From contig OZ076417.1 in NCBI GenBank assembly GCA_964187785.1, forward strand, positions 23,126,001 through 23,190,000: 64,000 nt of DNA, given 5' to 3'. The notes under the pieces are model-generated. The model made no database searches. It saw only the letters and a list, made by a program, of their open reading frames with translations, and had not been told where the DNA came from. Within the stretch, counting starts at the first letter, position 1. Each line of letters begins with the position of its first letter. Below, piece after piece: positions 5,601 to 32,100 of this stretch. The stretch comes from Amphiscolops sp. MND2022. Taxonomy: Eukaryota. Both the position numbers and the translations under genes were made by a program.

Positions 5601-8600
5601 TTCGGGAAGAACATTCGCATGAATCGCTAAATGAAATGTTAACACTCCAAAATTCTAATTATTCTTTACGCTCTATGGATAGACTAGAGTCTTCGGTTCC
5701 TTTCGGAAACACGAAGAAATTCAATCATTCGTTAGCGAAACGGGTTCCTAAATTAGTCAATAACTTATCTAGAAATGGTATCTTACCTGACAATTCAACA
5801 CCTGACAATTCAACAATAAAATCCTACAGTCTCTATCAGATTAATCGTAACCGTGATAATATTTTCAAAAGTTTCATCATAGGTAATCCAGAGTTTGTAG
5901 ACTTCGTCCTCGATGTCCGGAAATGATCGTTTCAGATTATCGAACACGACTTTTTTCATTTTCTGTTGGGATGACTGACAAAAAGAATCATTGGAATCTT
6001 CCTATCTCCCATTAGCTTCCGCCCCTGATGTAAAAAATCCTGCGTTAGTGTTCCAATGAGCTCTTATCTATGGTCCCGTGATCATCGTAGGCTCTTGGAC
6101 CAGTTAAGTCGAGTATCAGGTGTGCGGAAGCTGTTATTATAATGAGGGTTATCAGTGCTCACGAGTTTCAATTTTTTCACCTTTTTCGTGCTGGTTTCAG
6201 TCATTTATTCGTCTCCTCTGTAAAATAGCAATCAAACTTGAAAAAAAACGTGGCCCCCACCCGAAGTAAACAATATAAACTTGTGCTTCTAAATGTTCGA
6301 GGCATTAAAAGCAAACTTAAGCTGAATGAAATCTACAATGTAGTAACTGAACATGATGTAATTGGGTTAACAGAAACGCTGTCAAACGCTTTTGATTTTG
6401 AGAATCTAGAAACTCATGAAGTTTTCAGTGGAAGTGATAAATTAAATCTCAAAGGTTTTAGGGGTCTTGCCCTTGTTGTACGGAAGTCGTTAAAATACAA
6501 ATTTTCGGAAACTGATCCAGGGCTTTGGGTCCATGTTGAAGTAGGAGGATACAACTTTTCGATTGGGCTGTATTATGCGCCTTGCGAGGGATCAAAACAC
6601 TGGGATGTAAACTTCTTCGACGAGATCCAAGCAGACGTACTACATTACAAGTGTCAGGACCGTAATGTGATTATAATGGGAGACTTTAATGGGCGTACTG
6701 GAGAAAACGATGATTACATAGAAATTGAAGATGAATTAAATGATATGATTCATAGGAGTAACTGTGACAAGCTAGTAAATACTAATGGACGCCTATTGTT
6801 GGATATGTGCAAAACTACTGAAATGAGTATTGTTAACGGAAGGGTAGGGGATGACAAGGGGATTGGTGCTTTCACTTGTCACACTCATAATGGTAGGAGC
6901 CTTATTGACTACTTCCTTGTCAACAGCTCGGCCTTAAGCCTAATTGACAATATCACAGTCTGGCCATTTGACCCTTGTCTCTCCGACGTTCACTGTGTGA
7001 TCGTAATGAGAATATCAAATACCGAAAAGCATACCGCTCCAATGAAGGAATGTGTCTCTAAAAGAATTAGGAAATGGAACGATGAAATGAAAAGCAGCTA
7101 CAAATGTGATCCACACTTCAATGAAATGACGGACATTGATGCACTCCTGGAATCTGAATTGAATACCCTTCAAGCCCTGAACGAAACAAATTCCTTATTA
7201 GTGAATGTCATAAAAAAATCAGCCCTGAATTGTGGCGCACTACGTTATGTTTCGGGCCAAACTAAAGCAAAGTATAGTTCGTGGTTTGATAGGGACTGTA
7301 AACTCCAGCGGTCAATTTATCGGAGAAAACTACGAAATGCTTTGAGGCGAAATGACCAAGACCGTAGGAGATCCGCATTTCGTGAATACAAGCGTTTCTT
7401 GCAGAAAAAAAGGTCTGCAATGTCTGCAAAAACTAACGGTTTTTTGCGGAACATGAAGTCTAGTGATCCTAAGGGCTATTGGTCTTTGCTGAAAAGTTTT
7501 ACTAAGAGCGATGTAAACATACCGATTGATAAGACAACTGTCTTCCAACATTTCAAAAACCTCAGTAGTGCCTCGAACTCTAATATAGTTGAAAGTCATT
7601 ATAATGTTGCTGAAGTGAATGTGACTATTAATAAAAGTTTTAGTGTTGATGAAATTTGTTGCTGTTTAAAAAAAATAAAGAATGGAAAGTCAGCTGGTCA
7701 TGATGATATCTTTCCGGAGTTTCTTAAGTATGCACCTGAGAAACTTGTTGTGGTGATTACGAAGTTCTTTAATGCAATTCTTGATAGAGGGGAAGTGCCC
7801 GATGATTGGGCACTTTCAGTGTACTGCCCAGTCTATAAAAAAGGTGATAGAAAAGACATAAATAACTACAGAGGAATATCTCTTGCAAATTGTCTGTGTA
7901 AATTGTTTACCTCTCTTCTAGCGGAAAGAATGCAGAAAGACCTAGAGAGCAGACGAGTGTTAGGAATAGAACAAGCAGGTTTTAGGGAAAGTATGGGGTG
8001 CACTGATCACGCTTTTGTCCTTTATACTATAGTATCATTCTACTTAGCCCAAAGAAAAAGGCTGTTTGTCACATTCATTGACTATGAGAAAGCGTTCGAT
8101 CGCGTTGATCATAATTTACTCTGGATGAAGTTGGCTTCATGTACGATTAATGGTAAAGTCCTGTCGGTCATAAAGAACCTTTATGAAAAAACAAAAGCGT
8201 GTGTAAACGTTAATGGGTCTCTTACCGATGTTTTTGAATGTCGAATAGGAGTAAGGCAAGGTGATAATCTATCACCTCTACTCTTCATTGTGTTTTTGAA
8301 TGACTTCCAAACCTTCGTGTCGTCGAAGTTCACTGGCCTGCAACCAGATGTTTTAGCCCAAAATGTACAATGTTTTTTGAAGCTTTTTGTGCTTCTGTAT
8401 GCGGATGATACACTGCTGTTAACCGAAACAGAGAGTGACATGCAGAGAGCAGTTGATGCGACCTTGCTATACTGCAAGCAAAACAGAATGAATATAAATA
8501 TTGATAAAACAAAGTATATGATTTTTTCTAGGGGTAAAGTACGAAAAACCGTTCCCATACTTGCTGAAGGTAAAGCACTTGAGCGTGTTGACACATTCTG

Positions 8601-11600
8601 CTACTTGGGAATCGTCTTTCGGTATAACAATATGTTTCAAGCTGCCATGAAATATAACATCGATAAAGCAAAAAAAGCAATGTTCAAAATGGAAACCCTG
8701 CTTGGTAAAGTTGATCTAGAAATTGAGACGAAGCTACATCTTTTTGATACGATGGTTCTACCGATCTTGATCTATGGGTGCGAGGTTTGGGGTTTTGAAG
8801 AAATTGAGCAAATTGAAGTTTTCCATAGGAATTTTTTGCGGCGTGTTTTACGTGTACGGAAAAGTGTCCCAAAAGGTATGATATATGGTGAACTAGGACG
8901 TCAAGAACTTAAATTTATTATCTGGCAAAGAATGGCTAACTTCTGGAAGAAAATCAATGTGCAACATAATTCATTTTCAAGTATAACGTTCCAATGGATG
9001 AATAAAAATGTCCAGATAACAGCATGGCACCAAAGAATAAGGCAAATTTTGATTAACTGTGGTATACCATTTGCCGAGATGTATGCAGGCTATATCGCTG
9101 ATGCAGAATTCAAAAAGTATGTGAAAGACAGATGCAATGAACTTGCATTTCAATCGTGGCAAGGTATGATACATAATAACTCGCTCTGTGACAACTACCG
9201 ACTGTATAAACATCGATTGGAACTTGAAACTTACTTGAAATTACTGAAGGGTCCAGCGAAATGGAGATTAGTTGACTTCAGGTGTGCTTCGTCAGCACAC
9301 CCCAAAGTAATAACACGATATCTAGGACGTCCGGCAGAAGAATGTACACTATGTGGGCTGCCAGGAACTCCAGATGAGTACCATCTCCTGTTTGTGTGTG
9401 TAAAAAGTTTGAAAATAGACGTAAGATCCTTTTACCCGGACTTTATCAATCATCCCCGAATGTTATCAAGTATGACCAGCTGATGAATACCAATAATATA
9501 AAGCTCTTGAAAAATCTTTCTGTTTTATGTGGTGCTATCCATGATATGCTTCTACACACCTCAGCTGAAACAATGTTTAGTTCGTTAAATTTGTAAGCCT
9601 GCGGGCAACAAATAATAATAATAAATCTTCATGCAAATCTTCATGCTGTCAATGGCGACTCCTCCCACAGGAAGGTATTCCACGGGATGAAAACCTTCCA
9701 TCAAGATGTTTCAGCTAGACTAGGATACTACTTTTTTCATTGACAATAATTGCGGGTATATTGAATTTTCGTTATCCACAAGAAGTTATATCCATGCATG
9801 AGTTTTTTCTCACTTCATCTGATCGAGTATTCATTTGTCCTTAACAACGTCGCCAGTACACTAGGGGTATCTCTCAGGAACAGTTACTGTCGCTTCTAGA
9901 TTCGGTCTCGAAGCTTTTATTTTGTTAGAACTCGGCTTTCTTTTTCTCTGCAATGCAAGAAAAGTCCATACAAGAGAAAAGTAAAAAAAATAATATATTA
10001 CAAAAAACAATATAGGACACAACTCATTTCGATTGCGTGGATTAAGACGTCCGTCAAGCGGGCGTTTGCCTTTGGAAGTCTTTTCTGTTGAATTTCTGTA
10101 TTTTTCTTCTTGATATTGTTCTTTATTATTCAACAGATAAAATTATATTATAATGTCGTCTGAAAATCTTTTTCAAGAGTTTTCTTTACCATACAATCAG
10201 CTGGTGCGTTTAGAATTTCCAGAAACTGAATTGCCGAATTCGGCACAGTGGCCAAGTTAAGGTTAAAGTACCACTAGGTTAATTAGGGTTAACTATTATG
10301 TTCATATTTCGAAAGATTAATATCTATTTTTTTTCAATACATCGTGTTCAACGAATAACATTTTTAGGTCTTATCTCATTGGATGAAATGAAGGCTAAAC
10401 AGACACAGATAATCAAGGACAAAGAGTCGGAACTCATCTCTAAAGCTGTTGTGGATACCAGGTAAAAGCTTTTTCTTGCTTCAATCTTGCTATTGTAATT
10501 CTCAAAGCTGTTTCTTTCTGAACTTATGGAAAATATTGTTTCAATTAATAAATTATAGCACCTTCAAATCACCAGAACCCGGTTTCTATACAGCTCCCCC
10601 GACAGGTTCTTTGTCATTCGCATTTGACGACGAAGAAAAAGACAGCGAAGACGAAGATGAAGAGTCAAGTGAAAAAGTTGATGTTTCCAAGTTCAAGAAA
10701 TTCAAAAAGAATCCAAATGTCGATACTAGTTTTCTCCCTGATGCCGCACGAGACGTGAGTTTTGTTATTTTCTATCGTTAGATTTCTGTTAACACCAATT
10801 GTTCACTATTTTCTCAACTTGAGTTTTCTAGAAACGCATCATGTTTGAAAACATCCGATAGGAACCAATTTTAGCGTTTCACTTTAACTGTTAAAAGTGA
10901 CAGCCAAATGTTGTTGCAAGATCGCAATGCAGCAATACTTTGACGATTTTCCTTATTGCTTCTTCAATACTTGGCCTAATTTGTCATAATTTCGCAGAGA
11001 AACCACCTTCTGATCAATCATTGACCATATAAGCAATCCCGAAAGCATCCTGATCTGTCAACACGTTTGCAGTATCCATAATGGTTAACGGTCGACTGAA
11101 AGCGTGACGTTGTTTACCGCGTCATTCATGGTTGTTGTTTCGTTTTTTGATTGAATGATTGTGTGTTGTATTGTTTGTTGTTCTTTGTTTGAGGTCCTTT
11201 CCAGGAGCAGGAGGCGGAGCTGAGGGAGAGTCTGAAGCAAGACTGGCTGCAGAGACAACAGAGGATAAAAGACCAGGTGCTCAAGATTGAGTACTCCTAC
11301 TGGGACGGGTCCGGACACAAACGCGAAATGCTGGTACGCAGTTGCATACACGTGCATGTTAAATCCCTTTACTGTGGAATCCGCCTAATTCGTATCGCAA
11401 GGGACCCAATAAAACAGTACGCATAATGAGAAATATGAAGTAACCGGAGGTCTTCGCAAAATGGGGTGTCAGATACATACGAATTGACAAAGACCCGAAT
11501 TAGCCGGATACCAATTAGCCGGAGTTGACTGTATATTTGTTTAATGGTAAAAACCGATTAAGAATGTATAAACACATATGGGTCTGCTCTTCAATGTGAA

Positions 11601-14194: not shown

Positions 14195-17100
14195 ATGTCT
14201 TACGTAACCTCTGCCGATTGCCCTTCCTACCGACCAATCCACCAGACCCTGTGCATAAGAAAGATCAACTTCGACAAACAATCGCTTTTCGGGGTCGTCG
14301 AAATAAAGCTCAAAGTTCACAGGTTTGTTTGTTCACATGAAGTCAAGAACTGTGTCCGCAACTGATCGAATCAATTTTTTCTCCATATTTTGCTTCGCGA
14401 GTTGATTGCTTTCAGTAAAATTGTTTAAAATTTTTTTTTAAATTAAAACAAGTATCTAAATTTATACAACAGTTATATACAAGTATATAAAACAACTTGT
14501 ATTATTGATTGGAGGAATACACCTGAAATTGGGAAATCACTGAGTGATCAAAAAGCAAATCACACCTGCATTTTTTTTACAAAACAGGGAACTTAATGAT
14601 AATTTGGCAGTCATTTCACTTGAGACTTTTGGCTGTTTCAATTGAGAATGAACGTTTAAACAGTACTTCTTCAGTTTAATGTAGATACTAATCCGGAAAT
14701 TTCGCTGTCCTTTGTTTTTCAATCCCACTCCACTGTTTATTTTTGTAGAATTATTTTCGTTTTGGATTTTCTTTTGCTCATTAAAATTTATTTTGCATAT
14801 CCGAAAAATCTTTGTGACTTCCGAAGATGTCGATTTGAGAAACTGTCATTGTATATTAGATGTATCTATCCGAGCGACACTTAATTAAACTACTTCTATA
14901 AAACTTCAAATCCAAAATTTATATGCGCAAAAATTAATGTTTGAAAGTGATGCAATCCGGTTTTCTAGGCGAAAGTGTTCAAGTTCAATTCATTTTTGAT
15001 ATTCTACTTCACACAATGATGAAATTACTGCTGTAATTTTGATTTATATTTTGAGGAAGTTCAATCTTTTTCACACTCATTTTCTCCAGCTGGTTGCTTC
15101 TCTCTTCTGAATAATGTGTTTCCCACCTTTTTTGGGTTTTTCCATTTCTCGAATTTTCTTTCCAATGTGTGAGAATTCGGTTTCTTCTGAATGTATTCAT
15201 CCAAAAATAGTACGAGCAGGAAGAATATCACGTATAATAATATAAGGTGGCTAAAATTTTGTTTCAGATTCCCACTGGAGAAAGTGACCCTCAACTGCAG
15301 ACACGCGAGGCTGTACAGAGTGACTCTGAATGGAAGCAAACAAATTGGGTTCGAGTACCGCGACCCCACCCTTCTCGTGTGCCCGGACGACATCAAACAG
15401 AGAAACCTGGACTACTTCTGTGGGGCCTACATGCAGGCCATACAGGCTACCAGCTTCGAAAATGGTTGGTGGTACTTCGGTCGTTGTTGTTTTTGAAGAC
15501 AAATTCAAATTTGCGCTTATGAGATCTTCGGCTCTTTTTCCTTTTCCACACACTTTCGAAGAAAAAAATGCAACATAAAGGATTATGTTGAGACTAGAAT
15601 ACAAAGAAGAAGAATTCGTTCAATTAAACTGACGTTATTGATTCAATCAGATTTTGACACATTGCTTAACATGTTTGAATGACTTTTTCACGCCTTGTTC
15701 ACATTTGATTTCTTGCTGCCATTTTCGATAATACAAATCAGTCTGTTTTCTCTTTTTCAATTCATTGCTCTCCCGAAACACAACATTATTTGGTGCATTG
15801 CGACCAGGGAATTATCAGAAATTCATCACAAAGATGACAAGCAGATACGAAAGCAAAAGTTTGGATCAACTCAAAAGATCACGTTCAGCAATCAGTGGTG
15901 TGATCACCAAAAACAAAGTTCAAATCGACGCAATTTTGACACAAAAAATTGCCGATATCGACACAGCTAAAATTAGTTTCTTAGAAGGGCTACAGGAAAA
16001 GCTCGAAGAACGACTAGCAGACTCAGCTCATCTGAATGCTGCTATCTTAGAGAAAACACCAGACGAAGATGCCGCAGTGGAACAAGAATTCGTAAACGCA
16101 GAAGAGTTCGAAGAGAGAATTCGAACACTAATCAAGACAATTGACAATTTCCTGCAGCAATTGGAAAAGCCAGACCCAGCACTGGTCACCGCAGTCGCAG
16201 CTACTACTTCCTCGACGGGCACAGCCTCGGGAACAGGACATTTGAAGATGCCGAAATTCGACTTACCAAAGTTTGACGGGCAATACACGAAATGGGTTCC
16301 TTTTTACGAACAATTTATCGCTTCCGTGGATAGCAACAGCTCCATTCCGGACATACAGAAGTTCAACTACTTAAAGTCAGCACTTTCAGGTGAAGCTCTG
16401 CAGTTAGTAGCACATATACCTCTTTCTACTTCTAACTATAAGGTTGCCTTGAAATCATTGCGAGAAAGATACAATATAAAACGGCTAATTATCAATTCTC
16501 ACATTGATAAAATCTTGCAATTGAAGCCACTAGTCAATGAATCAGCAGTTGAATTGCGAAAATTGATGGTCGCCTTTGAAGAAAATTTGATGGCATTGGA
16601 CGCTTTGAACGTCAAAGGTGGAGATCCATATTTGATTCGATTTCTTTGGCAAAAATTAGACGAAGAATCTCGAAAACAATGGGAATTACACTGTCCTGGT
16701 ACTGGTTTGGAAACGTTAGACGAGTTCAAGGATTTCATCAACAAGCGTGTTCGCGCCTTAGAGTCATATATCGACCCTTCAACTCAAAATAAGAGTTCCC
16801 AAAAAACGTCATTTTCAAGAGAAATTCACCGCCAAAAAACACATTTTCCGGCTTCACAAAGTTACAAGGCCACAATTGAAATTTGTCCATGCTGTAATGA
16901 AGCTCACAAGCTTTTCATGTGCAAAAAATTCGAGTCCTTAAATGTCAAGGATAGAAAAAATGTTGCTTACAACTCCAAGCTTTGTTTCAACTGCCTATCA
17001 TCTGGACACGTTACAAAAGACTGTATGTCCAAAAGTTCATGCAAAAAATGTCAAGCCAGGCATAATACGCTTCTACACGTTGAACCCCACTCCAACAACG

Positions 17101-20100
17101 GAGAGACCTCCAGCTCAGTTGTTTTGGGGCATCAGGGGACATTTTTTTCGGCGGGAATTTTGCCAACCGCGATAGTCACGATTGAAGATCAGGCTTCTAA
17201 CATTCATACTTGCCGAGCCCTACTTGACACAGGCTCTCAAATAAACCTCATTAGCGAGGAAGCAGCTCAGAGAATGGGGCTGAAACGAGAAAAACGGTCT
17301 TTGACAGTCAATGTAGTTGGAAACATCTCAAAAACTCATAATTCAGGACTTGTTCAGTTGCATCTCAAGTCCAAAAATTATGGAAAATCAATTTCTATAC
17401 AAGCTTTTGTTCTGCCCAAGCTAACGCAGAATGTTCCCAGCAAAACGTTTCTCACAGATGGTCTTTTACATATGAAGACAGTTGAACTCGCCGATCCAAC
17501 TTTCAACAACACAGGCTCAATTGATTTGATCTTGGGATCCGAAATCATAGAAGATATTTATCTGGATGGAAAATTCGAGGAATCGAACGGTCTCAAATTT
17601 CGCAATACAATTTTTGGTTGGGTTGCCTCTGGCAAGCATCCGCAAGGTCACAGTCCATCCTTCACAACTTCCCTTTGCATAAATGAAACATTTGATCTAA
17701 AGAAATTCTGGGAATTAGAAGAACTTCCACCCGCAGAAAAGTTCACACAAGAAGAAATAGATTGTGAAAAACATTTCACTGATACTACCAAAGTAGTGAA
17801 TAACAGGTTCACAGTTCAAATGCCATTCAAAGAAAATTCTCAAAAACTTGGAGATACATACGTTCAAGCAAAAAGACGATTTCTCAGTCTAGAAAGAAGA
17901 CTTCATGCCAATGACAAATTGAAACAAGATTATACAGATTTTGTGAATGAATTCATAACTTTGCAGCATTTAGAGAAGGTTCCTGAAGAGGAATACGAGA
18001 TTGACTCAGAAAAGGTCAATTTTCTACCGCATCATTGTGTCCATAAAGAAGATTCAACAACAACTAAAATCAGAGTAGTTTTTGATGGTTCCTCCAAATC
18101 CACATCAGGTGTTTCACTAAATGACACTCTCATGGTTGGACCAACGATTCAACAGGATCTGTTTTCAATTTTGATAAGATTTAGACTTCATCAAGTCGCA
18201 CTTTCGGCCGACATTGCAAAAATGTACAGACAGATCGCACTCAGTAAAGAAGCACAAAACTTCCATAGAATTCTTTGGAGAGAAGATCCCTCGAAGCCAA
18301 TAGAACAATTTCGCATGACACGTGTTACATACGGGATAGCCTCGTCCGCATTCCATTCGACCAGATCATTAGTAGAAGTTGGAAATTTGTGCAAAAACGA
18401 AGAAATTGGACATTCGATAAAGTTTGACTTCTATGTCGATGACTATCTTTCTGGAGCGGAAACTTTAGAAGATGCAAAGCAAAAGGTACACGAAATTTGC
18501 ACCCAACTCAAGCAGTATGGTATGGAACTCCGAAAGTGGGCCTCCAGTCACAGTGACATCATTGTAGAATTGCCGCAACATCTCCGAGAAAGTTCAGATG
18601 AAGAAAAATTCATGGATCAGAATTACAAAATCAAAACTCTCGGAATATCTTGGAAGCCAAATCTCGACAGTTTCATATTTCACTCCAATTTTTCAGACAC
18701 TTCACAAATAACCAAACGCAAGCTCTTGTCTGAAACAGCGAAACTATTTGATCCAGTTGGTTGGCTAGGACCAGTAGTCATTCAATTTAAAATACTTCTT
18801 CAAAAGATTTGGACACACGGTGTCGGTTGGGATGACATATTACCAGCCGAAACAGAACAACAGTGGATTGAAATGAAGTCTGATTTGTTAACTCTACAAG
18901 ACTTCACACTTCCGCGTTGCATAGTACCTTCTTCAAGAATTGTAAATGTACAATTTCATCTTTTCACGGATGCATCAGAATCAGCATACTCAGCAGTTGT
19001 TTACAGTCGCATAATTGATGAGAATGGGTTCATCAGCACGAATCTAGTAGCAGGAAAAACTCGCGTCGCACCTATTAAAACAATCTCTCTTCCACGATTG
19101 GAACTATGTGGTGCACATCTTGGAACAAAACTTCTGACAAAGGTTTTAGCAGTAATGAAAATATCCAAGTTTCAAAAGATCGAATCTTTTGGTTGGACAG
19201 ACGCAACAATAGTTCTTCAATGGTTAGCACAGTTGCCACGTACATGGACAACATTTGTAGCAAACCGTGTATCTGAGATACAGCAAACTTTGCCAAGATC
19301 ACACTGGAATCATGTTCGATCAACTTCAAATCCAGCTGATCTTTCTTCAAGAGGTTCAAGGTTCACAGACCTCAAGGTATCCACGCTCTGGTGGAATGGG
19401 CCAGATTGGCTTGCCATGCCATCAGACACTTGGCAAAAGACACCTCTAGTTGTAGATTCATCAATTCGACACAAAGTCACCGAAGAAGAAAGAAACAAAA
19501 AGTCACGCGAAAACAATCAACCAGAAACAGTTACAACAAGTCTATCTACAACATCAACACAGCCAATTTATGATGAGAATGTCTACTCAACATTGCATAA
19601 GCTATTTCGAGTGATTGCCACAGTCAAAATAGCCATTTCCAGATTCAAGAAAGACAAGATTCCTTGTCAAATCACATCACAACTACTACAACATGCAAAA
19701 TTGCATTTTCTCATCCATCACCAAACCACACATTTTCACGAGGAATACAGCCTTCTACAATCACAAAAGGAATTGCCCAAAACAAGCAAATTACTCAATC
19801 TCTGTCCATTCTTCGACACAGAAACAAACACCATTAGAGTCGGAGGACGACTTTCGCAAGGTAATTTTCTTGAAAAGAATTTTCCATTTCTCGTCAAAGC
19901 CAATTCAAACTTCGCCAGCTTGATACTACAGCATTTTCATGAAGCTACCCTTCATGGTGGGGGGCAGCTCACTTTGAATACCAGTCGCGAAGAATATTGG
20001 ATTCCCAAAGGAAAAAATCTCGTCACAAAGATCATAAAGAATTGCGTCAAATGTAGCCGATTCTCAAATGAAATTCCAGCTCAAGTCATGGCCGATTTAC

Positions 20101-23100
20101 CAGCAGAAAGAATCACCGAATCACGCCCTTTCACTAACACTGGAATCGACCTAGCAGGACCATTAACCACGAAGCCAGACAACAAAACATACATCGCAGT
20201 CTTTGTTTGTTTTACTACCAAGGCAACTCATTTGGAAATCGTACAAGATTTGACAAAGGAATCGTGCATATCTGCGCTCAAACGATTCATTGGTAGACGA
20301 GGAAAGCCAGAGAAAATATTCAGCGACAATGGAACCAATTTTATTGGAGCCAGAAACGATCTCCTAAAGATGCAATCATTATTCAGCAAGGAGAACACTA
20401 AAGATTCAATTTCAAACTTTATCTCTCAGAAAGGCATCGAATGGGTCACGATCCCACCGCGAGCTCCACACTTTGGCGGGCTGTGGGAAGCCGCAGTCAA
20501 AAGTATGAAGCGCCACTTACGAAGAACAGTCGGATTACAGAAACTTTCTTATGAAGAACTCAATACTTTCATCATACAAATAGAAGCCATCTTGAACTCA
20601 AGACCAATAACAGCTATGTCGAATGACCCAAATGATCTTCGTCCACTTACCCCTGCACATTTTCTCATTGGTACTCACATGGAGCAGATCCCGCAAGGCT
20701 GCAAGGGTAAAGACATTTCAATGAACCAAAGATTCAATTTACTGGAAAAGCTCAAATCCTCATTTTGGTCATCATGGCACCGCGACTATCTTGTTACACT
20801 TCAAATACGGAAGAAATGGCTCACAGCAGGACCGAAATTTGCCGTTGGTGTATTAGTGCTACTCGCGGAAGACAACATACCAGCATTAAAGTGGAAAATG
20901 GCTCGTATCCAAAAATTATTCTCCGGCAATGACGATGTAAACAGAGTAGCAGAATTGAAAACAGCCAATGGAAACCTCATCCGACCTATTATCAAACTCA
21001 GGAGGCTGCCAATAACGTATGGTGAACCACAGAGCAACAGAGGATAACTTACAGATTGATTTTACTTAAATTTTCATTGAAATTTCATGTTCGCAAAAAT
21101 TCCCAAAAATTGACTTTCGCAATTTTTGTCCCCTGTTGCCCCGTTTGATGTTACACGCATAAATTGTGTACCGTTACCTCACTAGGTCCCTAGTGCATGC
21201 ATTCATATAGGTTACACCGCTCAAAAAAGTTATATCACTGAGATAATTGCATTTTCAACCAAAATTTTCAGGTTTTTTGAAAAATCCTTCTTGAGTTTTG
21301 GTTAAGTTTATTTCACTTCTCCCAATTTCTGGATAAATTTATGGGTACAGCAGCATTCTATAGCTACATGGGTTTCTTTCTACAGTTTATGGCACTATAC
21401 TTTCTACAACCTTATGATTTACTGGCATAGAGACAGTCTGCACATCACCACTATCACATACTTTATTCGGCTTATCAAAGTATTTACCTGCAATAGTCAA
21501 TTTTGTTGACTGCTACCTGGCTGCTGCCTTCGACAGGCAACCGCAGTATACTTGTTGGCAAGAGTAAGCTGCTGTTGCGCCCTCTCCTCGTCCACAAACA
21601 TCTCAACAGAGAACATTGGACAAATGCGGCCCTCCTCCACATCTGTCCAGACTGAGTGCAGCCAGCCATAAGGAAGGTATAGAGACTGCCCAGGCTCCAG
21701 AAGGACCCAGAAAACCTGCTTGGCCATCGTCTTCTTCAGGCTCTGCAAATAGCGAAGGGTTCTACTTGCTGCCTCTCTACGATCCCTTCCCAGACGATCC
21801 AGCTCTCGCGCGACATTTGACAGGTTGCACATTACCCACAACTTCTTTCCTCTCAGCAATGTCAGAAATGCATCACCTTCCTCATGTAGATCATGATGAA
21901 AGGCTCGGAAACTGGACTGCTCTACCAGAATCAACAATCCTCGCCTTTCCTCCACCACACTCGGAAGGGGCTGCCGCAGCACAACTGACCCCTCACAGAA
22001 TCCTCCAGTCAAAACCCTTGACGGCAACTCCAAGGCGTTCTGCACCTCTCTCCCTCTCTGCACTGACGTTGGCAGATTCTCAAAGCTGCTAGCAGACAAC
22101 AGCGCCTCCTATAAGCATCAAGTACAACAGATATTTGCAATTTTATTCATTTTTTGTTCTAGTACAATTCTGGACACCTTTTGTTTATATGATTCATTGT
22201 TTCAACAAGAAAGAATTCTTACCGATTCTGCTTCGGGCAGCCACCCAACGCTCGAGGTCAACAAAGCAGGTTCCTCGCGACGCTGCAGAACCTCATCCAC
22301 CCCTCGAACAGGCACCTTTGAGAAATTGGAGCCCCTCAACCACAGAAGAAACTCATCGAAGGTCGGCAAGGCTTCCTTCTTCTCATCTCTTCTGGGCCTC
22401 TTGAAGGACTCCTCAAACTCGGGCATCTTGGGCTGTCTTCCACTCCTCTTTCTTCCCTCCTCAGATCCCATATACTCAGCCATTGCAAAATCTGAAAATA
22501 TTTGAATCATCTCTGACGGATCCTTCAAGGTGGGCGGGATGTTGAGACTAGAATACAAAGAAGAAGAATTCGTTCAATTAAACTGACGTTATTGATTCAA
22601 TCAGATTTTGACACATTGCTTAACATGTTTGAATGACTTTTTCACGCCTTGTTCACATTTGATTTCTTGCTGCCATTTTCGATAATACAAATCAGTCTGT
22701 TTTCTCTTTTTCAATTCATTGCTCTCCCGAAACACAACAGATTATATTTGGCTATATCGTTTAAGATTTCTTCAAATAAATCTTTTCCTTTGCTTTGTTG
22801 TTTCCACATGAAATCTCACAAGTAACTGTCAACCATTCTTCAATGTATACCCTTTTGTGTGTACGCCATCTGACTCAATCCTGTGGAATTCCGAGTTAAA
22901 GAGTCATTTCAGTATTACAATGGAAACAATTTTGAGTTTTAAATAAAAGATAACGATCCTGAAGAAATTTGACAACTTCATTTTTTTTCGTTCACGCTAA
23001 CACAATTTTGCGAAATTCATTATTATTTCTGGGATAATATTGAAATCTGAATTATTGAACTTTTTTCAGTTCAATTTTTGTCGTGATTTTGAGTACCTAC

Positions 23101-26100
23101 AGTAACATTCAGATATTTTGTTCGGCAGTGAGTATAAGCGTGAGATTTAAATTTCTCAAGCTGCCGACAATTCGTTTCTCGTGCGATGGAACGAGCGAGT
23201 GGTAATTATGCTTTCATACGCCGAGTTATTGAGATGAAGCGAACGAGCGTTAATTATTCGTTCACCGAGAGCTTCGCCTGCATTCATGTGCGAATGCGAA
23301 GCTTCGTCTACGCTTAGTAGTTGTTTTCTTTAGTCCGAGAAGAATAAAAGGCGGTGTAAACTGGTAGTGATTAATTGTGCGCTATATAAATGATTAAGAT
23401 ATGCTCCTATTATCGAACAATACTGTGCCCCGCAGGGGCTATTTTTGCGAATCAGAATAAAACCGGAAGCGAGATGAAAATTTTTTTAAAAAGGCTTGCA
23501 TGGTATTGTTCTACGTACTGGTTTTATGAAAGTCTTAATAATTGTGTCATGATACAATCATGATACATTTACAAAAATTCGATGACAGAATGTATTTAGC
23601 CAATAAAAGTTGTGGACCAATCAGAGGCTGACAACACTGAGATGGATGACGATACGACGAAGTGGTCAAACACAAGAACAGAAGATAACTTTCTCAATCT
23701 AAAGAACACTCGCTCTAACTGTTGTAAATTATATTACTCAGTTGTAACTTCTCTTCAACTTTTCTTCAACATTAAAACTAATTTCTTCAATAAAACTTTA
23801 TTCACTCTGAGTAAAGGAAAATAACCCAGGCTAAATCTGAAGTATAAAAGCGATACAAAATGTTCTTTATAAAACTCATAGTCCACCGCTCGGACCAACC
23901 TCATGACATGGTGACAGGAGTCTCTTTTCCTGTTCACTCAGCCTTCTTTCTGAACAACTGAAACACAACAACTTCTGATTAAAACATAGCTATGTTCATC
24001 GATTCCAGTTGATAATTCTACAAAATTTTGCCTGAAATTCTCCATAAAATTTTCTTTCTACACACATTCTTCATAATTGTTTCTCTTCACAAAACTTTCA
24101 AATGGCCGCTATTCAACCTTTCGTTAACCTACAGCCTTTTAAATGCACAGAAAAGGAAAACCTCAATGAATTTTTACGACAACTTGAAAGCTGTATTCAA
24201 GTTGCTGCTGTACCTAATGATGACAGACATAGATACCTACACCTTCATCTAAAAGGAGGTGCACTCACATTTTTCGACCAACAAGAAGCAGCAGTTCGAG
24301 ATGACTACGATCAAGCAGTAGCAGCCCTACGTGACAGATATCAAAATGATCAGAGAATTCAGCTTCAAAAGTTGCTTTTCAACTCCCGCAAAATGAAACC
24401 CTCTGAGGAAAGCGCTCAGGATTTTCTTACTGAATTGCAACGATTGGCTTTGGAAGCCTACCCCAACGTTGTAGCAAGAGCCGCCGCAGGAGGACGACCT
24501 GCAGTAGCAGCAGAAGATCGTGCTCAAGAAAGATTACGACGAGTGAGAGAAGCATTCATTAATGGAATGCCTATCAAACTCAAACGTTTCTTAATGACAC
24601 AACCAGACGAAACTCCAATTGAGGAGTTATGCACAAAAGCTTCTAGCAGAATGATTGTAGATCGTCTTTACCGTAAGGAAGATGACGACACCGCCTTCAA
24701 CGAGCTTCAGAATTTCTCCACAAAAGATCTCACAGGAATCCATGAGTTGTCAAAAGCACAAGATGTTCTCAAGCAAGAAACTGGAAAGCTGTCCACCGAA
24801 TTGCAAGAATTGACCAAAACCTTGCAACCGACCATTAACCAGCTCACTACAGCCCAAACTTCCAACAACAATAATAATAATAACAGAAACAATAACAACT
24901 ACAACAAAAACAAGCAGCAAAATTGGAACAAAAATAATGGTCCCCGTGGAAACAACCCTCAGCAATGGAGAAACAACCGGCAGAACTGGAAAAATAACAA
25001 CAACAATCAGCAAAATTGGCGACCGCCAAACCCAAATTGGCAAAATCAGAAACCCAACTGGAATCAGCAACGAAACAATAATACTGCGCAATCTAGTCAG
25101 AAATACTGCAACTACTGCAACAAGTTCGGACACATACTCTCACAATGCTGGTTTCGTCCACAACAACACCAACCTCCAGCCCTACCATACACCCAATACT
25201 CAGCGCCGAACTTCACAGCTCCACAACCCATGATGCAGCCCCAGCAGATGGTACCCATCACTCAAATGCCTCCATATTGGTCACCCCACTATGACGTCAA
25301 TCAACAAGCCTCCAATCCAAAAAACTAAGTAAGCCACACATCGCCCATATTTCTCCTTCTTTATCTACTAATATGACTAACTCTTCATCATTTATAAACA
25401 TCCTTTCCTCAAAGCCTCGCACTTCACTTTTCTCTGTACCACTTAATTTTTCTTTCCCAGTTAAAGCTTTAATCGATACAGGTGCTTTCTCAAGCGTCAT
25501 GCCCATAACCATTTTCCAAAAACTACAACGTCTTTGTCCAAAAGCTATAACAAACTATAATCCAGCAACTAGCTCTGTGAAAGTGGCAAATGGTGACTCT
25601 GTAACCACCTATGGTACTTTTCGAGCTTCTTTTAAAATTGCAGGTGAATCTTTCACTGAAACTTTCATTTTAATGCAAACCATGAACCAGACACTTTTGG
25701 GATTACCATTTTTCGAGAAAAATGATATTTCTATTCACCCGAGAACGAGAACGCTTAAACTACCCAATATGACTTTACAATTGACCGAACGGATACATAA
25801 AGACGGAAAAGTAAGTTCTCTTACTCCGAAGAAAAACCTTTTCTTACACTCTATTCAAAACTATTCGATACAACCGAATACATCCGAAATAATCACTTGT
25901 TCTCTCTCAGCTGAATCCTTCCCTGAAGGAACAGTAGCTATTGTAGAACCGAATCCGCGTTTTGAAAAACAAACAGGACTTTGCGTCACCAGCGCAATTG
26001 TAAAACTGAACGACCAAAAACAAGTTTCCCTCGGGATACTTAATATCTTGCCATACAAAGTAACAGTCACAAAAAATGTTCCTGTTGCAAAAGTAACAAT

Positions 26101-29100
26101 CTTGACAGCCAAGCAAGCTCAATACTTGCACCCTATCGATCCTGAACATCTTTTTGACCATTTAACTAAAAGCATTAATGGTCTCATTGAAGACTCTGAA
26201 ACCAAAGTATACCCATCAACAGATGAGTTTTTGTTTCCTACACCGGAAAATTGCAAAGACCCAGAAAACCTCACAGGAATTCACAAAAGAATTTATGACG
26301 AGATCGTTGCTCTAAAAGCACGAGAAAAGCTAGAACCAGACAAAAATTTAGAAGACCGAAAGAAATTTCTATCACAATTTACATGGGAAAACTGTTTTTA
26401 ACGCTGAACAGATTAACATAGTTGAAACGTTACTTTTAAAATACCACCGAATTTTTGCAAGACATCCCTTAGACATTGGAGCAAATGAAGAATTTAAAGT
26501 GAAACTTACTCCTGAAAATGATAAGCCGATGTATACCCAAGGTCCACCGACCCCGATTCACTACCGCGATGAAGTTCTAGTGGAATTGGCATTTTTGCAA
26601 TATTGGGGAGTAATAACAACCATGACGTACTCTAAGTACTCAAGCCCAATTTTTGCCGTCCGTAAACCCTCGGGTAAATTGCGAATTTTAGTAGACCTTA
26701 GACGAATTAATCATTTAATCAGGCATGATTACGATAATCACAATTTTCCAATAGCAACACTAGCAGATGTAAATGCGCATCTTGCAGGCAAGAAGTATTT
26801 TGCAAAATTGGATTGCAGTCAAGCGTATCATGTCCTACAAATGGCTGACCCATTGTCAGTGCAACTGCTGGCTTTCAATTTTCTTTCAAGGACATTCGCA
26901 TATTTGCGCTTAGCTCAAGGACTAAGCCGCTCAGTTAGCGCCTTTAGTTCCTTCATGCGAAAATACTTATACCCTTGTATAGTTGCCGACCAGTGCTTTC
27001 AATATGTTGATGATCTAGGCACTGCAGGCAAAACTTTTGAAGAATTTATTGTCAACTTAGAAGCCATCTTTCAATGTGTACAAAAGACAGGTCTAAGACT
27101 CACACCCAGTAAATGCGAATTTGGTCTAAAAGAAATGATTTTTGGGAAATACGATTACAAGCGAAGGAATGTCTCCCAACAAAACGAAAGTAACAGATTT
27201 TTTAGCCACTCTGAAACCACCTAAAACCATAAAGCAGATTCGACGATTTATTGGTTTTTTCCAGTATTTTCGTTCATTTATTCCCAAACTTGGTGAAAAA
27301 CTGCTACCATTCTACCAATTGTTACGAAAAGAATCAGACATTGTTTTAACAGAAGAACACCATAAAAGTATCACTACTTTACGAAAAGCATGTCAAATGT
27401 CGCTTCGCCTACCTAAACCAAACGCACAATATGTAATCTTGACTGATGCTAGTTTCTACGCAGCTGGATACGTCCTCTTAATTGAAGACTATTCCATTGA
27501 TCAAACAGGCAAAACTCACAAGACATATGTGCCAGTCTCTTTTGGTTCTAAAATCTTCACCCCAACCTATCTAAAGCTGTCCATTTATGCTAAGGAATTT
27601 TTAGCTGTGCACTTTGCATTTGACACATTTGCACATATCCTATGGGGAAGTTCTAAACCAGTGTTAGTTCTAGCCGATAATAAAAGTCTAACTAGATTTT
27701 TTCAAGCTGAAACAAGTCCGTCAAGCCTTTGGACGTGTGTGGATCACGTTTTGAATTTTAACTTTGTCCTAGGTCACATACCAGGAAAAGCCAATGCAGC
27801 GGCAGATTATCTGTCTAGAATTCATATCCAACCACACACTAAGCTAGAACTCCGCTTCAATTCTAAAATACCTGTAGCTGATGTCCACCTCCATATGGGC
27901 ATGCAGGTCCCTGATAATTCAGTAAATTCTTTTAAATTTGACTGTGAAACCTTCAGTCTTCCGAAAAGTCTCCGTGAATCTTTTCCCGAAATTAACGCCC
28001 TCCATTCTCCGAACCCTTTGGATGACTTGGACCTTTCTGATAAATTAACACCCTTAAACTTGCGTGAGGAACAACAGAAAGATAACACTATTAGATTAGT
28101 GTTATCATGGTTAGAAACAGGACCGCCTTCTGACTTTCCTTATATGAGTACGGAACTTCGAAAGTATCTCAAACACTTTGACCGTTTAGAAAATCACCAT
28201 GGTATTTTATACCGTAAATTTTTTGATGACACTGGCCGAAATTTTATTCGCCAATATGTCGTTCCCCAACATTTGCGAAATGAAGTTCTCTATCGAGTCC
28301 ATAATAGCAAGTATGCAGGCCACCCTGGCATTGCTAAAACAGCAGAACTCTGTCGTAAACATTTCTATTTCCCTGGTTTTGTTGAATTTCTAGCCAATTA
28401 TGTAAAAAATTGTAGCTCTTGTCTACAAATCAAACCCGTTAAACATCAAACGTTGAAAACACCACTTTTGTCCCTTGCGACTGACAAATACTATCCAGGT
28501 GATATGCTTCAAGTAGATCTTGTAGGTAAACTACCCGATTCTGCTGGGTACACACATATCCTCACAGCCAAAGACACTTTTAGTAAATATCTTTTTGCGA
28601 CTCCTCTGCGCAACGCCAGCGCACCGATTGTTGCGAAACAGTTATTTCACATTTTTATGAGATCCGCCTATATACCAAAAGTTGTTCTTTCGGATATGGG
28701 AACAGCGTTTACCTCCCGTGTCATGACTGAACTAAGTCGATTACTTGAAATCAAACTAGAATGTGCCACTGTGAAACACCCACAAACTGTTGGGTCCGTC
28801 GAGCGCTCTCATGCGTCTCTGAAACAGTATCTGGGCATATGTGAGAACAAAATTAAACGTGATTGGCACCAATACGTAGATCTGGCCGTGTTTGTACATA
28901 ATACGGCTTACCATGCTTCAATTGGATGCACTCCAACATTTTTGTTCCATGGCCGACAACCCCATTCACAACTTGATTTACGGTTCGATAATAAACTTTT
29001 GCAAACTCTTGAAACACGCTATGAATTCACGAGTACTCTTCAAGATAAAATGAACGAAGTTTTCTCTCTAGCACGGTATGCTACCATCACTGCTTACAAT

Positions 29101-32100
29101 AAATACAGACATTTCTATGACCGAAAAGCGTCAGCCGCCCCATTGAAAAAGCATTCGTTTTGTTTACTCTTAAATCCAAAACTTTCAAATACCAACGACC
29201 ATATGGGAAAATCGCTCACCAAATGGCTACATCTGTATAGAGTTGAATCTGTACTAACGAACTCAAACTACATCGTTCGAAAGGTAGGAACCAATTACAC
29301 TCAGTGTGTACATCGAATTCGACTTCGTCCCATCACACCACAATACACAGTCGATGATATTTCTAATATCAACCAGTCTAATTTTGTTCCTGACCCCTCT
29401 ACGAGACACGTCTCAGAGCCTGCCCTCTTTGATCAGGCTCTTCCAGACCTTTTAACCGATCGTACGTTCACTACGGCATTCGAAGTTGATGACACGCCAG
29501 CCGTCGTATTTCACTATGTTCCCCGTCGCGTGCCACCGGCGCCACCACCGGCTCCCCCGGCACCTCAGGCTCTCCTGGTACCCCCTCCGGGTCTACCGCA
29601 GCCTTTACATGCCCTACCTCCTCCTGAAGTCCCTCCTAACCGCGACTTCCCACACGTAGAAAATCATGTTGATCTTCCTCCCGTTATTTATCAAGCTCGG
29701 CTTGATACTTCGACTGTACCACTCCACGATCAACACCATCATCCGTTTTTCGTTTCCTCCTCCTCAGGAACACCGTTTTCTTCAATAAACATGCCCCATT
29801 CTTCATTTTTTCCCACCCCAGAAACAACATTTACTTCTGACGATGTTTTTACTGTCGCTCACCCGACTTCTGGTATAGCAACGACTATTACCTCTTCGAC
29901 ACGTCGCCAACCTCTGATGCACTCTACCCCTATTTCAAGTCATGTTTCATCCTCTAACTTTCCTAGTCCTTCTGGATTACCCAATGCACCTATACCAACC
30001 CGGGACTTTGAACAATCAGCTTCGCCCCCTTATCACTCGGAACGTATACCGATATATACCCCCGGTCATGAGAGTTCGCCCTCTTCGTTTTCGGTATTTT
30101 CGGAAACTCTCGTTAATCGAGCACGCGCTATTGCGTCACCACCTCGTAATAACCCTCATTTGAATCCACCACCTCTCTTTGACCTTTGTAATACCCCTTT
30201 TTATCCAAGCCAACCTAACTCGAAACAGGTATATCTTCGCCCACCATTATCACGCATTCCGCGTCCTACTACCCCTACACCTCCAACCTCCCCCCTACGG
30301 CACCCTTTTGATTCTTCTCCTTTCCCACGAGGAACCCCGTCATACCGCCTATCTACTACACCTGTGTTACGTATCACCGATCTTGATGCTTTCATTCGAG
30401 ATCACACTGTACCCACTACTCTTATTCGAAACACTCTTGCTCCTACCACCCCATCCACTATTACGATCACCACCTCAGCTTCCTCTAACCGTCGTGACAC
30501 TCGTTTACGACCCAAACCGAGCCGTACAACCTTTTAGTTCCAAACCATGGAAATAACACCCCTTTTTTACTGTAATTTTTCACACCATTTTTTCCATGAT
30601 TTTGGATAAATTTTCTATTTTTTCCTACCTAACCTTTCTTAATGTACCCTTTGCGCCTTCTACTACCCTCTGCTATCCCTCTAGTTCCTATTTCACCCAC
30701 CTAAAGCCCTGAATTACCCCCTTTTCATTGACATTTTTTGATTAAATTTTCGATTTTTTTTCGAAAATCGCTGTTTTTCGACCATTTTTGACTAGAAATT
30801 GCATCATACTTTTTCCCTATTGACCTGAATGATACCCCATTCTCACTCTGGGATCCCCCACACCCTCTAGGTATAGTTTTCAGGCCCCTTGGTCCCATAC
30901 CAACCCCTTTTACTTAGCAGTTTTTCAGAAAAAATTGACCATTTTTTGACCCCTGAAAAATCTGACCCTCAAAGACCCCTAAAAATCCCATTTTTTGGAA
31001 TTTTGATCCCGGAATAGCGGTGATCCCCTTTTTTACCCCAAACTTTCGATTTAGGCCAAAAAAATCGGAAAAATCGAAAAAAAGTGTAAAAAGTTTTTAT
31101 GGGGGACTTTTTGGCTCTTTAGTCTCTTTTTTTGCCAATTTTATGTATTTTTCTCTTTTTTTCTCAACCGTAATGGCCCCCAAACCTCTCTCCTAGCTTC
31201 CTATGATATTCATTTGCAAAAAGTTACCCCATACCTATCGCTTTCCTAGGAGTTTGACCCACAAAACATGAAAAAAAATCGGTATTTTTTGATTTTTCCT
31301 ATATTTTTCCATAAATAAGCGCATTTTCTTACCTTTGTCTGCATGGAGCTACTTCCACAGGCTTCCTGCTCTTCCTCCTCTTCCCAGGGATCCACAACAG
31401 GCCCTCGCACCCTCACTGACGTCAGCAATCTAATAAAAATACCCCTCTTTCTATAGAATCACCCTAAAAGCCTTACTGACTCTATGTAATAATTTATATT
31501 ACTCACTCTGGCTCAGGAAAATCGGGTAATGGTTCGCAATGGAAGCGAGTCCGAAACCTCTCGCCTCCCTGGATGGCTTGGCACAAGAAGCTGCCACCTC
31601 GCCCATTGCTTGCTGGTCCGTATTTGTAACGGATCCATCCGCCCATATTCCAGTACTGCCAGTACACAATGAGGTCTGTTTGCAGTACCCAGGCAGTTGC
31701 TAAGATCTGAAATATTTTTTTTGCCTTCACATAACCTCTCATCCTTACAATGGAAATACACATATGATAAGGCCACCATCTGACCCTTACCGCCGCCTCG
31801 GAAATGCTGGCCGTCACTTTTGCACACTCCTGTGCCAAGAAATCGTTGGGCGCGGTCCCAAGACATGAACGGCAGTACTCCTTAAATTCGGCAGTCTGCA
31901 TCGCCTCTGTAGCTGCCACGCGCAGCCCCTTGCACTTCCTACTTGGTGCACTGTTCTTCCGTTCTATATATAACGAACTTTTCGCTCACAGTTTTTTTAA
32001 TGCTTCACAATTTTTTTTAAATCCTCTTACCTGATTTCCTTCCAACCATCAAATAGTATATACTGGAGAAGAAACACTCGCCTCCGACTTCTGCCAGCTC

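Follow-up and report, generated by a model that had tools for sequence, protein, structure and literature searches.

An antisense gene within a BEL/Pao retrotransposon

The locus under study lies in a window of 64,000 nucleotides (nt) from Amphiscolops sp. MND2022 (GenBank assembly GCA_964187785.1, contig OZ076417.1, positions 23,126,001 to 23,190,000 of the forward strand), and positions below are those of this whole stretch. At 15586-22739 the window holds a complete BEL/Pao retrotransposon, and between its pol region and its 3' long terminal repeat (LTR) the minus strand carries a two-exon gene for a protein of 290 amino acids (aa), with the ATG at 22483. The analyses described here indicated that a diverse BEL/Pao lineage has long maintained this accessory gene under selection, and its product is predicted to adopt the JmjC fold. 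The features of the gene and of the element are as follows.

22223..22483, minus strand: exon 1, 87 codons, encoding a disordered basic N-terminus and then the first JmjC helices and strands
22109..22222, minus strand: intron of 114 nt, phase 0, GTAAGA...TTATAG, with GT..AG ends
21497..22108, minus strand: exon 2, 203 codons plus TGA (21499-21497), encoding the JmjC core with H158, D160, K176 and H238
21462..21467, minus strand: AATAAA polyadenylation signal, 30 nt past the antisense stop codon
15581..15585, no strand: 5' target-site duplication GATTA, identical to the 5-mer at 22740-22744
15586..15785, plus strand: 5' LTR, 200 bp, TG..CA, 100% identical to 22540-22739
15791..15809, plus strand: sequence resembling a primer-binding site, TGGTGC..., 5 nt past the 5' LTR, read directly from the sequence
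15834..21047, plus strand: BEL/Pao gag-pol open reading frame (ORF), first ATG at 15834, frame open from 15765, identified by Pfam domains
22527..22539, plus strand: polypurine tract AAGGTGGGCGGGA, abutting the 3' LTR, read directly from the sequence
22540..22739, plus strand: 3' LTR, 200 bp, identical to the 5' LTR, its edge 56 nt upstream of the antisense ATG
22740..22744, no strand: 3' target-site duplication GATTA, matching 15581-15585

The gag-pol frame matched the Pfam models DUF1759, Asp_protease_2, RVT_1, Peptidase_A17 (E 4e-48), Integrase_H2C2 and DUF5641. The features that characterize BEL/Pao elements were therefore all found, namely a Pao-type protease (Peptidase_A17), a reverse transcriptase, an integrase, DUF5641, LTRs and a target-site duplication. 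The TGGTGC... sequence at 15791-15809 is probably the complement of a tRNA 3' end. It was also observed that contigs of public sequencing runs aligned to this region broke into many differing flanks precisely at 22540 and 22739, which marked the LTR ends independently and indicated that many insertions exist. With its LTR pair identical and GATTA on both sides, the element is young and intact, and a preliminary description of this DNA, which had placed the gene inside the limits of such an element, was correct on this point.

The gene structure given in that description, an antisense gene of about 290 aa with two exons, a phase-0 intron and a polyadenylation signal, was confirmed at every coordinate. 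When the spliced window protein was aligned with intronless relatives, the alignment was free of gaps across the exon junction. Among 12 copies of the window clade, GT..AG was retained in 11, and the ATG, donor, acceptor and stop were kept in nearly all, with one acceptor and one ATG mutated. The spacing of AATAAA from the stop codon was the same in the L019 family. In at least four further lineages (L031, L036, L041 and L044), a GT..AG intron of 95-130 nt lay at the corresponding phase-0 site. It was missing there in one clade of the JmjC tree, represented by seven sampled copies, and in L039, the most divergent lineage; L015, L016, L019, L040, L048 and L039 are examples of intronless loci. 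This distribution fits a single gain or a single loss of the intron in a gene carried antisense through reverse transcription.

The intron at 22109-22222 was also compared with loci L007-L012. Divergence between the young family and the older subfamily was 8-13%, which was not above that of the exons overall and was well below the exon synonymous divergence (dS) of ~0.27. This low value might be due to decay of CpG sites in the exons, or the sense-strand RNA may constrain the intron. The sense-strand ORFs overlapping the antisense gene had no Pfam match. At the other end of the gene, a short motif, S-G-R-x-x-[KR]-x-P, was kept in the disordered basic N-terminus (window 22400-22470) in lineages that are ~30% identical there. 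Judging from its sequence, this N-terminus could be a nuclear-import or docking signal.

JmjC fold and active-site residues

The exon 2 product was compared with Pfam, and only one model reached its cut-off: JmjC_2, with 22.9 bits (cut-off 22). Cupin_8 gave an E value of 4.7e-5 and 23.9 bits (cut-off 27.4), and JmjC gave 0.078 and 13.9 bits (cut-off 24). A more distant relative, P0047, passed the JmjC model with 25.8 bits. The JmjC domain spanned approximately residues 40-285, and no further Pfam domain was detected in the 290-aa protein. We then compared a profile built from 14 genomic relatives with the PDB. The best match was PHF8 (E 1e-3), followed by KDM7, PHF2 and ceKDM7A, and the alignment placed the family motifs F-H-x-D, G-x-K-L-W and P-Y-G-W-x-H on F-H-I-D, G-E-K-I-F and P-T-G-W-I-H of PHF8. 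In a protein atlas based on a language model, the protein fell among JmjC/Cupin_8 clusters.

Structure prediction was performed with AlphaFold for exon 2 of the window alone and for an intronless relative of 287 aa, which is 47% identical in the exon-2 region. The window model had a mean predicted local distance difference test (pLDDT) score of 85 and a predicted template modelling (pTM) score of 0.80; the corresponding values for the relative were 83 and 0.80. In the latter model residues 1-40 had low pLDDT, residues 43-100 exceeded 90, and the alignment to PHF2 began at residue 37. Foldseek searches with both models were led by PHF2, ceKDM7A, PHF8 and KDM7A, at E values of 2e-8 for the homologue model and 5e-7 for the window model, and JMJD5, KDM2A, JMJD6, FIH and NO66 followed below. 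The matches in the PDB numbered at least 447 at E <= 1e-3, and the 50 listed were all JmjC or related 2-oxoglutarate (2OG) oxygenases. In VIA-align comparisons over ~210-230 residues (model residues 37-285), the Z scores were 14.6 for PHF2, 14.4 for KDM2A, 14.3 for ceKDM7A, 14.0 for PHF8, 13.7 for FIH and 13.0 for JMJD5, and the sequence identity to any solved JmjC domain was 10-14%. Taken on these models, the JmjC double-stranded beta-helix fold is settled. Since the KDM7-group, FIH and JMJD5 scores are nearly tied and the identity is so low, the comparison decides the fold but not the subfamily.

The residues expected at a JmjC active site were located as follows.

21898-21896, minus strand: metal ligand H158, the first His of HxD
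21892-21890, minus strand: metal ligand D160, the Asp of HxD
21844-21842, minus strand: 2-oxoglutarate lysine K176, in the G-K-K-L-W strand (21850-21836)
21658-21656, minus strand: metal ligand H238, the distal His

K176 lies 18 residues past H158, its G-x-K-L-W motif is invariant, and its counterpart in the PHF8 alignment is the Lys of G-E-K. Across 20 relatives, some of them from other samples and only 18-27% identical, D160, G174, K176 and W178 were invariant, and H158 and H238 were at least 90% conserved. The preliminary description had reported a complete JmjC metal set with the 2OG lysine, and a resemblance to KDM2 and KDM7 (PHF8), and it had proposed a search for fold or profile matches as a check. 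The residues were present, conserved and aligned to PHF8; the KDM2/KDM7 group ranked first by profile and by structure, with FIH and JMJD5 within ~1.5 Z at 10-14% identity; and the marginal Pfam matches were joined by AlphaFold and Foldseek matches to solved JmjC domains. Profile, fold and conservation agree, and the gene is beyond chance.

Copies, relatives and selection

A search of the 1.07-Gb genome with exon 2 returned 327 first-look candidates and at least 151 matches, which fell into identity tiers of 98-99%, 83-93%, 42-51% and 32-40%. We inspected 48 loci drawn from all tiers. In 45 of the 48 the gene stood tail-to-tail right after the C-terminus of a BEL pol. This pol was itself divergent, with identities of only 57-62% for middle-tier loci and 44-52% for those of the lowest tier. 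The idea that all copies lie inside BEL elements, put forward for checking in the preliminary description, held for these 45, and it failed for two rearranged copies and for one tandem array without pol (L038), in which the catalytic His residues are lost. The C-terminal pol domain DUF5641 gave 6215 first-look candidates in the genome against the 327 for exon 2, so that BEL/Pao elements are very abundant, the elements bearing the JmjC gene are a minority, and the gene is not universal.

To follow the history of the gene, the tree of its JmjC part was compared with that of the adjacent pol C-terminus. The major clades were common to both, including the window clade of five, L015/L021, L016/L027/L040, L034/L035, L039 with a copy from outside the assembly, and a clade of 12 members. 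One clear exception was L042 (G000:C10:2107240-2117180), whose pol is like that of L037 (G000:C7:8939155-8949120) and whose JmjC is like that of L044. The pol C-termini of L037 and L042 differed by a nonsynonymous divergence (dN) of 0.018, whereas their JmjC genes differed by 0.46 and belonged to different clades. This mismatch showed that recombination has moved the accessory gene from one BEL lineage to another.

For exon 2, comparison of the young family with the older subfamily gave dN/dS values of 0.15-0.32 at a dS of ~0.27. The pol C-terminus gave 0.11-0.61, so the exon-2 values were comparable or lower, and neutral decay, the alternative that a comparison between copies was proposed to expose, was not what we observed. 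The gene lies antisense to pol, in the interval that separates pol from the 3' LTR, and is conserved both among copies and among lineages, as an antisense accessory gene would be. These results indicated an accessory gene of long standing in a diverse BEL/Pao lineage, maintained by selection.

At the L038 locus (G000:C8:31637600-31647500), a JmjC-like ORF, 196 aa long, occurs three times in tandem at a spacing of 4.08 kb, and there is no BEL pol within 10 kb. The His of HxD is replaced (F-L-Y-D) and the distal His is changed to Asn. As read from its sequence, the array appears to be a non-catalytic relic or a domesticated array.

Beyond this genome, 1.84 billion representative proteins were searched exhaustively with the profile, and only 89 clusters reached E <= 1e-3. 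Small unnamed proteins of the same kind gave the strong matches, and the tail consisted of cellular Cupin_8/JmjC proteins at E ~1e-4. A word-indexed protein search returned near-identical ENA proteins only. In two relatives from other assemblies, L050 (ENA ERZ25074608) and L051 (a contig of 2859 bp in NCBI GCA_013332895.1), the gene again stood tail-to-tail with a BEL pol, and L049 (ENA ERZ26859043) was an orphan of 294 aa with no pol within 8 kb. Other relatives were found on contigs of 1-1.6 kb that barely exceed the ORF (ERR10503124, SRR14219491 and ERR12380048/9), and these could be transcripts.

The window contains other mobile elements. A neighbouring Ty3/gypsy-like element lies at 24102-30537 and continues to ~36000; its gag has an Asn/Gln-rich tail, and its pol ORF ends with a very long Pro/Ser/Thr-rich tail. 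A LINE-type (long interspersed nuclear element) ORF with an apurinic/apyrimidinic endonuclease and a reverse transcriptase, 1081 aa open, was found at 6238-9483, and a second endonuclease fragment at 42405-43034.

Proposed role of the encoded protein

The explanation that we prefer is that the BEL/Pao lineage carries an accessory gene for an active JmjC oxygenase that works for the benefit of the element, and we place its probability as a whole at roughly 0.55. The gene would form a separate antisense transcription unit that starts in the 3' LTR and runs backwards; the antisense promoter is placed there on the grounds that just 56 nt separate the ATG from the LTR. The intron, lying on the strand opposite to the genomic RNA, could not be spliced from that RNA, so it would be copied faithfully at each retrotransposition and survive it, as the geometry suggests. 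The product, a single-domain JmjC protein of 290 aa with an intact iron site and 2OG lysine, would most probably be active as an Fe(II)/2-oxoglutarate oxygenase. One use of such an enzyme would be to strip repressive lysine methylation from histones at the element copies, in the manner of KDM7, PHF8 and KDM2. Because the best matches are KDM7, PHF and KDM2 proteins, demethylation at the element copies is the leading single mechanism, and we hold it to be possible rather than probable. The fuller proposal, that an animal LTR retrotransposon lineage encodes an active histone lysine demethylase which is driven backwards from the 3' LTR and erases marks on its own copies, is more tentative again.

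Several observations weigh against parts of this explanation. The Pfam scores are marginal, with JmjC_2 alone passing, and the 47%-identical homologue had no Pfam match at all. The catalytic His residues are lost in some copies (L038, L037 and P0028), and where PHF8 has a Thr, three positions ahead of the first His, this family has Arg or Lys. The case for a demethylase is weak, since FIH (13.7) and JMJD5 (13.0) come within ~1.5 Z of PHF2 (14.6). The protein carries neither a reader nor a targeting module (PHD, CXXC or F-box/LRR), and most JmjC-only proteins are hydroxylases. The cellular proteins that came nearest in the all-protein search were closer to JMJD6-type Cupin_8 proteins than to KDM7. 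With regard to expression, searches of public runs found no RNA run with the sequence, and the contigs of the matching runs crossed the intron and had no splice joints. As these contigs cross the intron and break at the LTR ends, the matching runs are DNA, and expression is not refuted by them.

About as likely as demethylation is that the enzyme hydroxylates a protein, in the manner of FIH, JMJD4/5/6/7 or NO66, with a host factor, Gag or integrase as the target. This candidate follows from the JmjC-only architecture of a 290-aa single domain with no reader domains, from the matches to Cupin_8 and JmjC_2, which are hydroxylase-rich models, and from the near-equal scores of FIH (Z 13.7), JMJD5 (Z 13.0) and JMJD6; JMJD6 and NO66 are among the top 50 Foldseek matches, and motifs like those of JMJD6, together with Cupin_8, occur in the cellular proteins that came nearest in the exhaustive search. 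It is opposed by the best profile match, PHF8, and by the top 16 Foldseek matches of both models, which all belong to the KDM7/PHF/KDM2 group. Less probable is a role without catalysis, in which the JmjC fold would serve as a scaffold to counteract heterochromatin or to bind a host factor. The model for it would be fission-yeast Epe1, a putative JmjC demethylase with a reported non-enzymatic anti-silencing role (PMC7192584). The conserved linear motif S-G-R-x-x-[KR]-x-P in the disordered N-terminus suggests docking, and some copies have no catalytic His residues, both of which would suit a scaffold. However, little or no variation was found at the metal ligands and the 2OG lysine among lineages only 18-45% identical overall, as expected from selection on catalysis, and the copies without these His residues are decayed, or are tandem relics without an adjoining pol. 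We therefore consider the scaffold unlikely.

The remaining two explanations concern the origin and the reality of the gene rather than its biochemistry. The preliminary description had regarded it as captured cargo. On such a reading a host JmjC gene would have been taken up recently by this one BEL family, and an intron and its own polyadenylation signal do give the gene the look of a cellular one. This claim did not survive the wider comparison. BEL lineages with no more than 45-60% identity in pol carry the gene at the same place and in the same orientation, the gene tree tracks that of pol, and among the 1.84 billion representatives no cellular homologue without pol was closer than ~E 1e-4. 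The only pol-free copies seen were the L038 tandem relic, which has lost its catalytic residues, and the orphan L049 of another assembly. Because the gene co-diverges with pol and has no close cellular relative, it is better explained as an ancestral accessory gene, and a recent capture is highly improbable. It is harder still to credit a chance or shadow ORF in which only the antisense RNA matters, for example in regulating the element. Some retrotransposons are known to produce non-coding antisense transcripts (PMC7264820), but dN/dS values of 0.15-0.32, a confidently predicted fold that matches JmjC and conserved catalytic motifs all point to a protein-coding gene, and the shadow ORFs of the sense strand had no Pfam match.

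The preferred reading, an accessory JmjC oxygenase of the BEL/Pao lineage, can be compared with several known systems. The KDM7/PHF8/PHF2 and KDM2 (JHDM1) demethylases ranked first both by profile, with PHF8 at E 1e-3, and by structure, with a Foldseek E value of 2e-8 and Z scores of 14.0-14.6 over ~220 residues, and their HxD, G-x-K lysine and distal His align with those of the BEL protein. The latter differs in being only 10-14% identical, in having 290 aa instead of ~1000 aa and none of the PHD, CXXC or F-box/LRR modules, in carrying Arg or Lys for Thr before the first His, and in being encoded by a retrotransposon. FIH, JMJD5, JMJD6 and NO66/MINA53 resemble it in their single domain, in the Cupin_8/JmjC_2 Pfam matches and in Z scores of 13.0-13.7, whereas their scores are slightly lower than those of the KDM7 group, and the BEL protein does not have their dimerisation or winged-helix extension.

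As an antisense gene beside a 3' LTR it resembles HBZ of human T-cell leukaemia virus type 1 (HTLV-1), of which a spliced form exists; HBZ is a bZIP regulator, not an enzyme, and is unrelated in sequence. In HTLV an antisense promoter lies within the 3' LTR, according to work cited in PMC7264820. The plant Ty3/gypsy elements Grande (gene23), RIRE2 and Retand also have antisense ORFs between pol and the 3' LTR, with no recognisable domain, and for maize Grande a separate antisense promoter was shown upstream of the gene (PMC7264820). Position, orientation and conservation among copies are the same; the plant genes belong to another superfamily and have no known function, whereas the BEL/Pao gene has an enzyme fold and an intron.

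Element-borne factors that act on silencing marks have been described as TET/JBP in fungal DNA transposons, VANC in Arabidopsis VANDAL and SET in oomycete HarbingerS/MuDR (PMC12730594, PMC5735166), and TET/JBP are likewise Fe(II)/2OG dioxygenases. All of these are on DNA transposons (PMC12730594, 2025), whereas the present gene belongs to an LTR retrotransposon and to the JmjC family; the same survey, of December 2025, found no retrotransposon with TET/JBP and listed no JmjC. Epe1 is similar as a JmjC-fold factor opposing heterochromatin with histone H3 lysine 9 methylation, and it differs in being a larger host protein whose action is reported to be non-enzymatic (PMC7192584). The LTR elements of bdelloids have sense ORF3s of several enzyme types, among which neither JmjC nor cupin is mentioned (PMC5408684). 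In a survey of BEL/Pao elements in 62 non-mammalian and 11 mammalian metazoan genomes, env is the sole extra gene mentioned, and the words 'antisense' and 'JmjC' do not occur (PMC3118150). The preliminary description knew of no JmjC cargo in BEL/Pao elements, and in agreement with this we found no report of a JmjC gene as an accessory gene of a retroelement in the open-access full-text literature searched; an earlier report elsewhere is possible.

The gene combines two known kinds of system, the antisense accessory gene of LTR retroelements and the epigenetic-type enzyme borne by a transposon. Accessory genes of retrotransposons are rare and mostly without recognisable function. Here a gene for an oxygenase of the JmjC Fe(II)/2OG class has long been kept under selection by a diverse BEL/Pao lineage with young, apparently intact copies, and the enzyme could let the element act on host chromatin or proteins. 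Should histone methylation be the target of the enzyme, no counter-silencing factor of an enzymatic kind would have been found on a retrotransposon before it, and the arms race between chromatin silencing and retroelements would become directly testable in an animal. If the enzyme has another substrate, the gene would still be a clear example of an antisense gene that keeps its intron and goes through reverse transcription unaltered.

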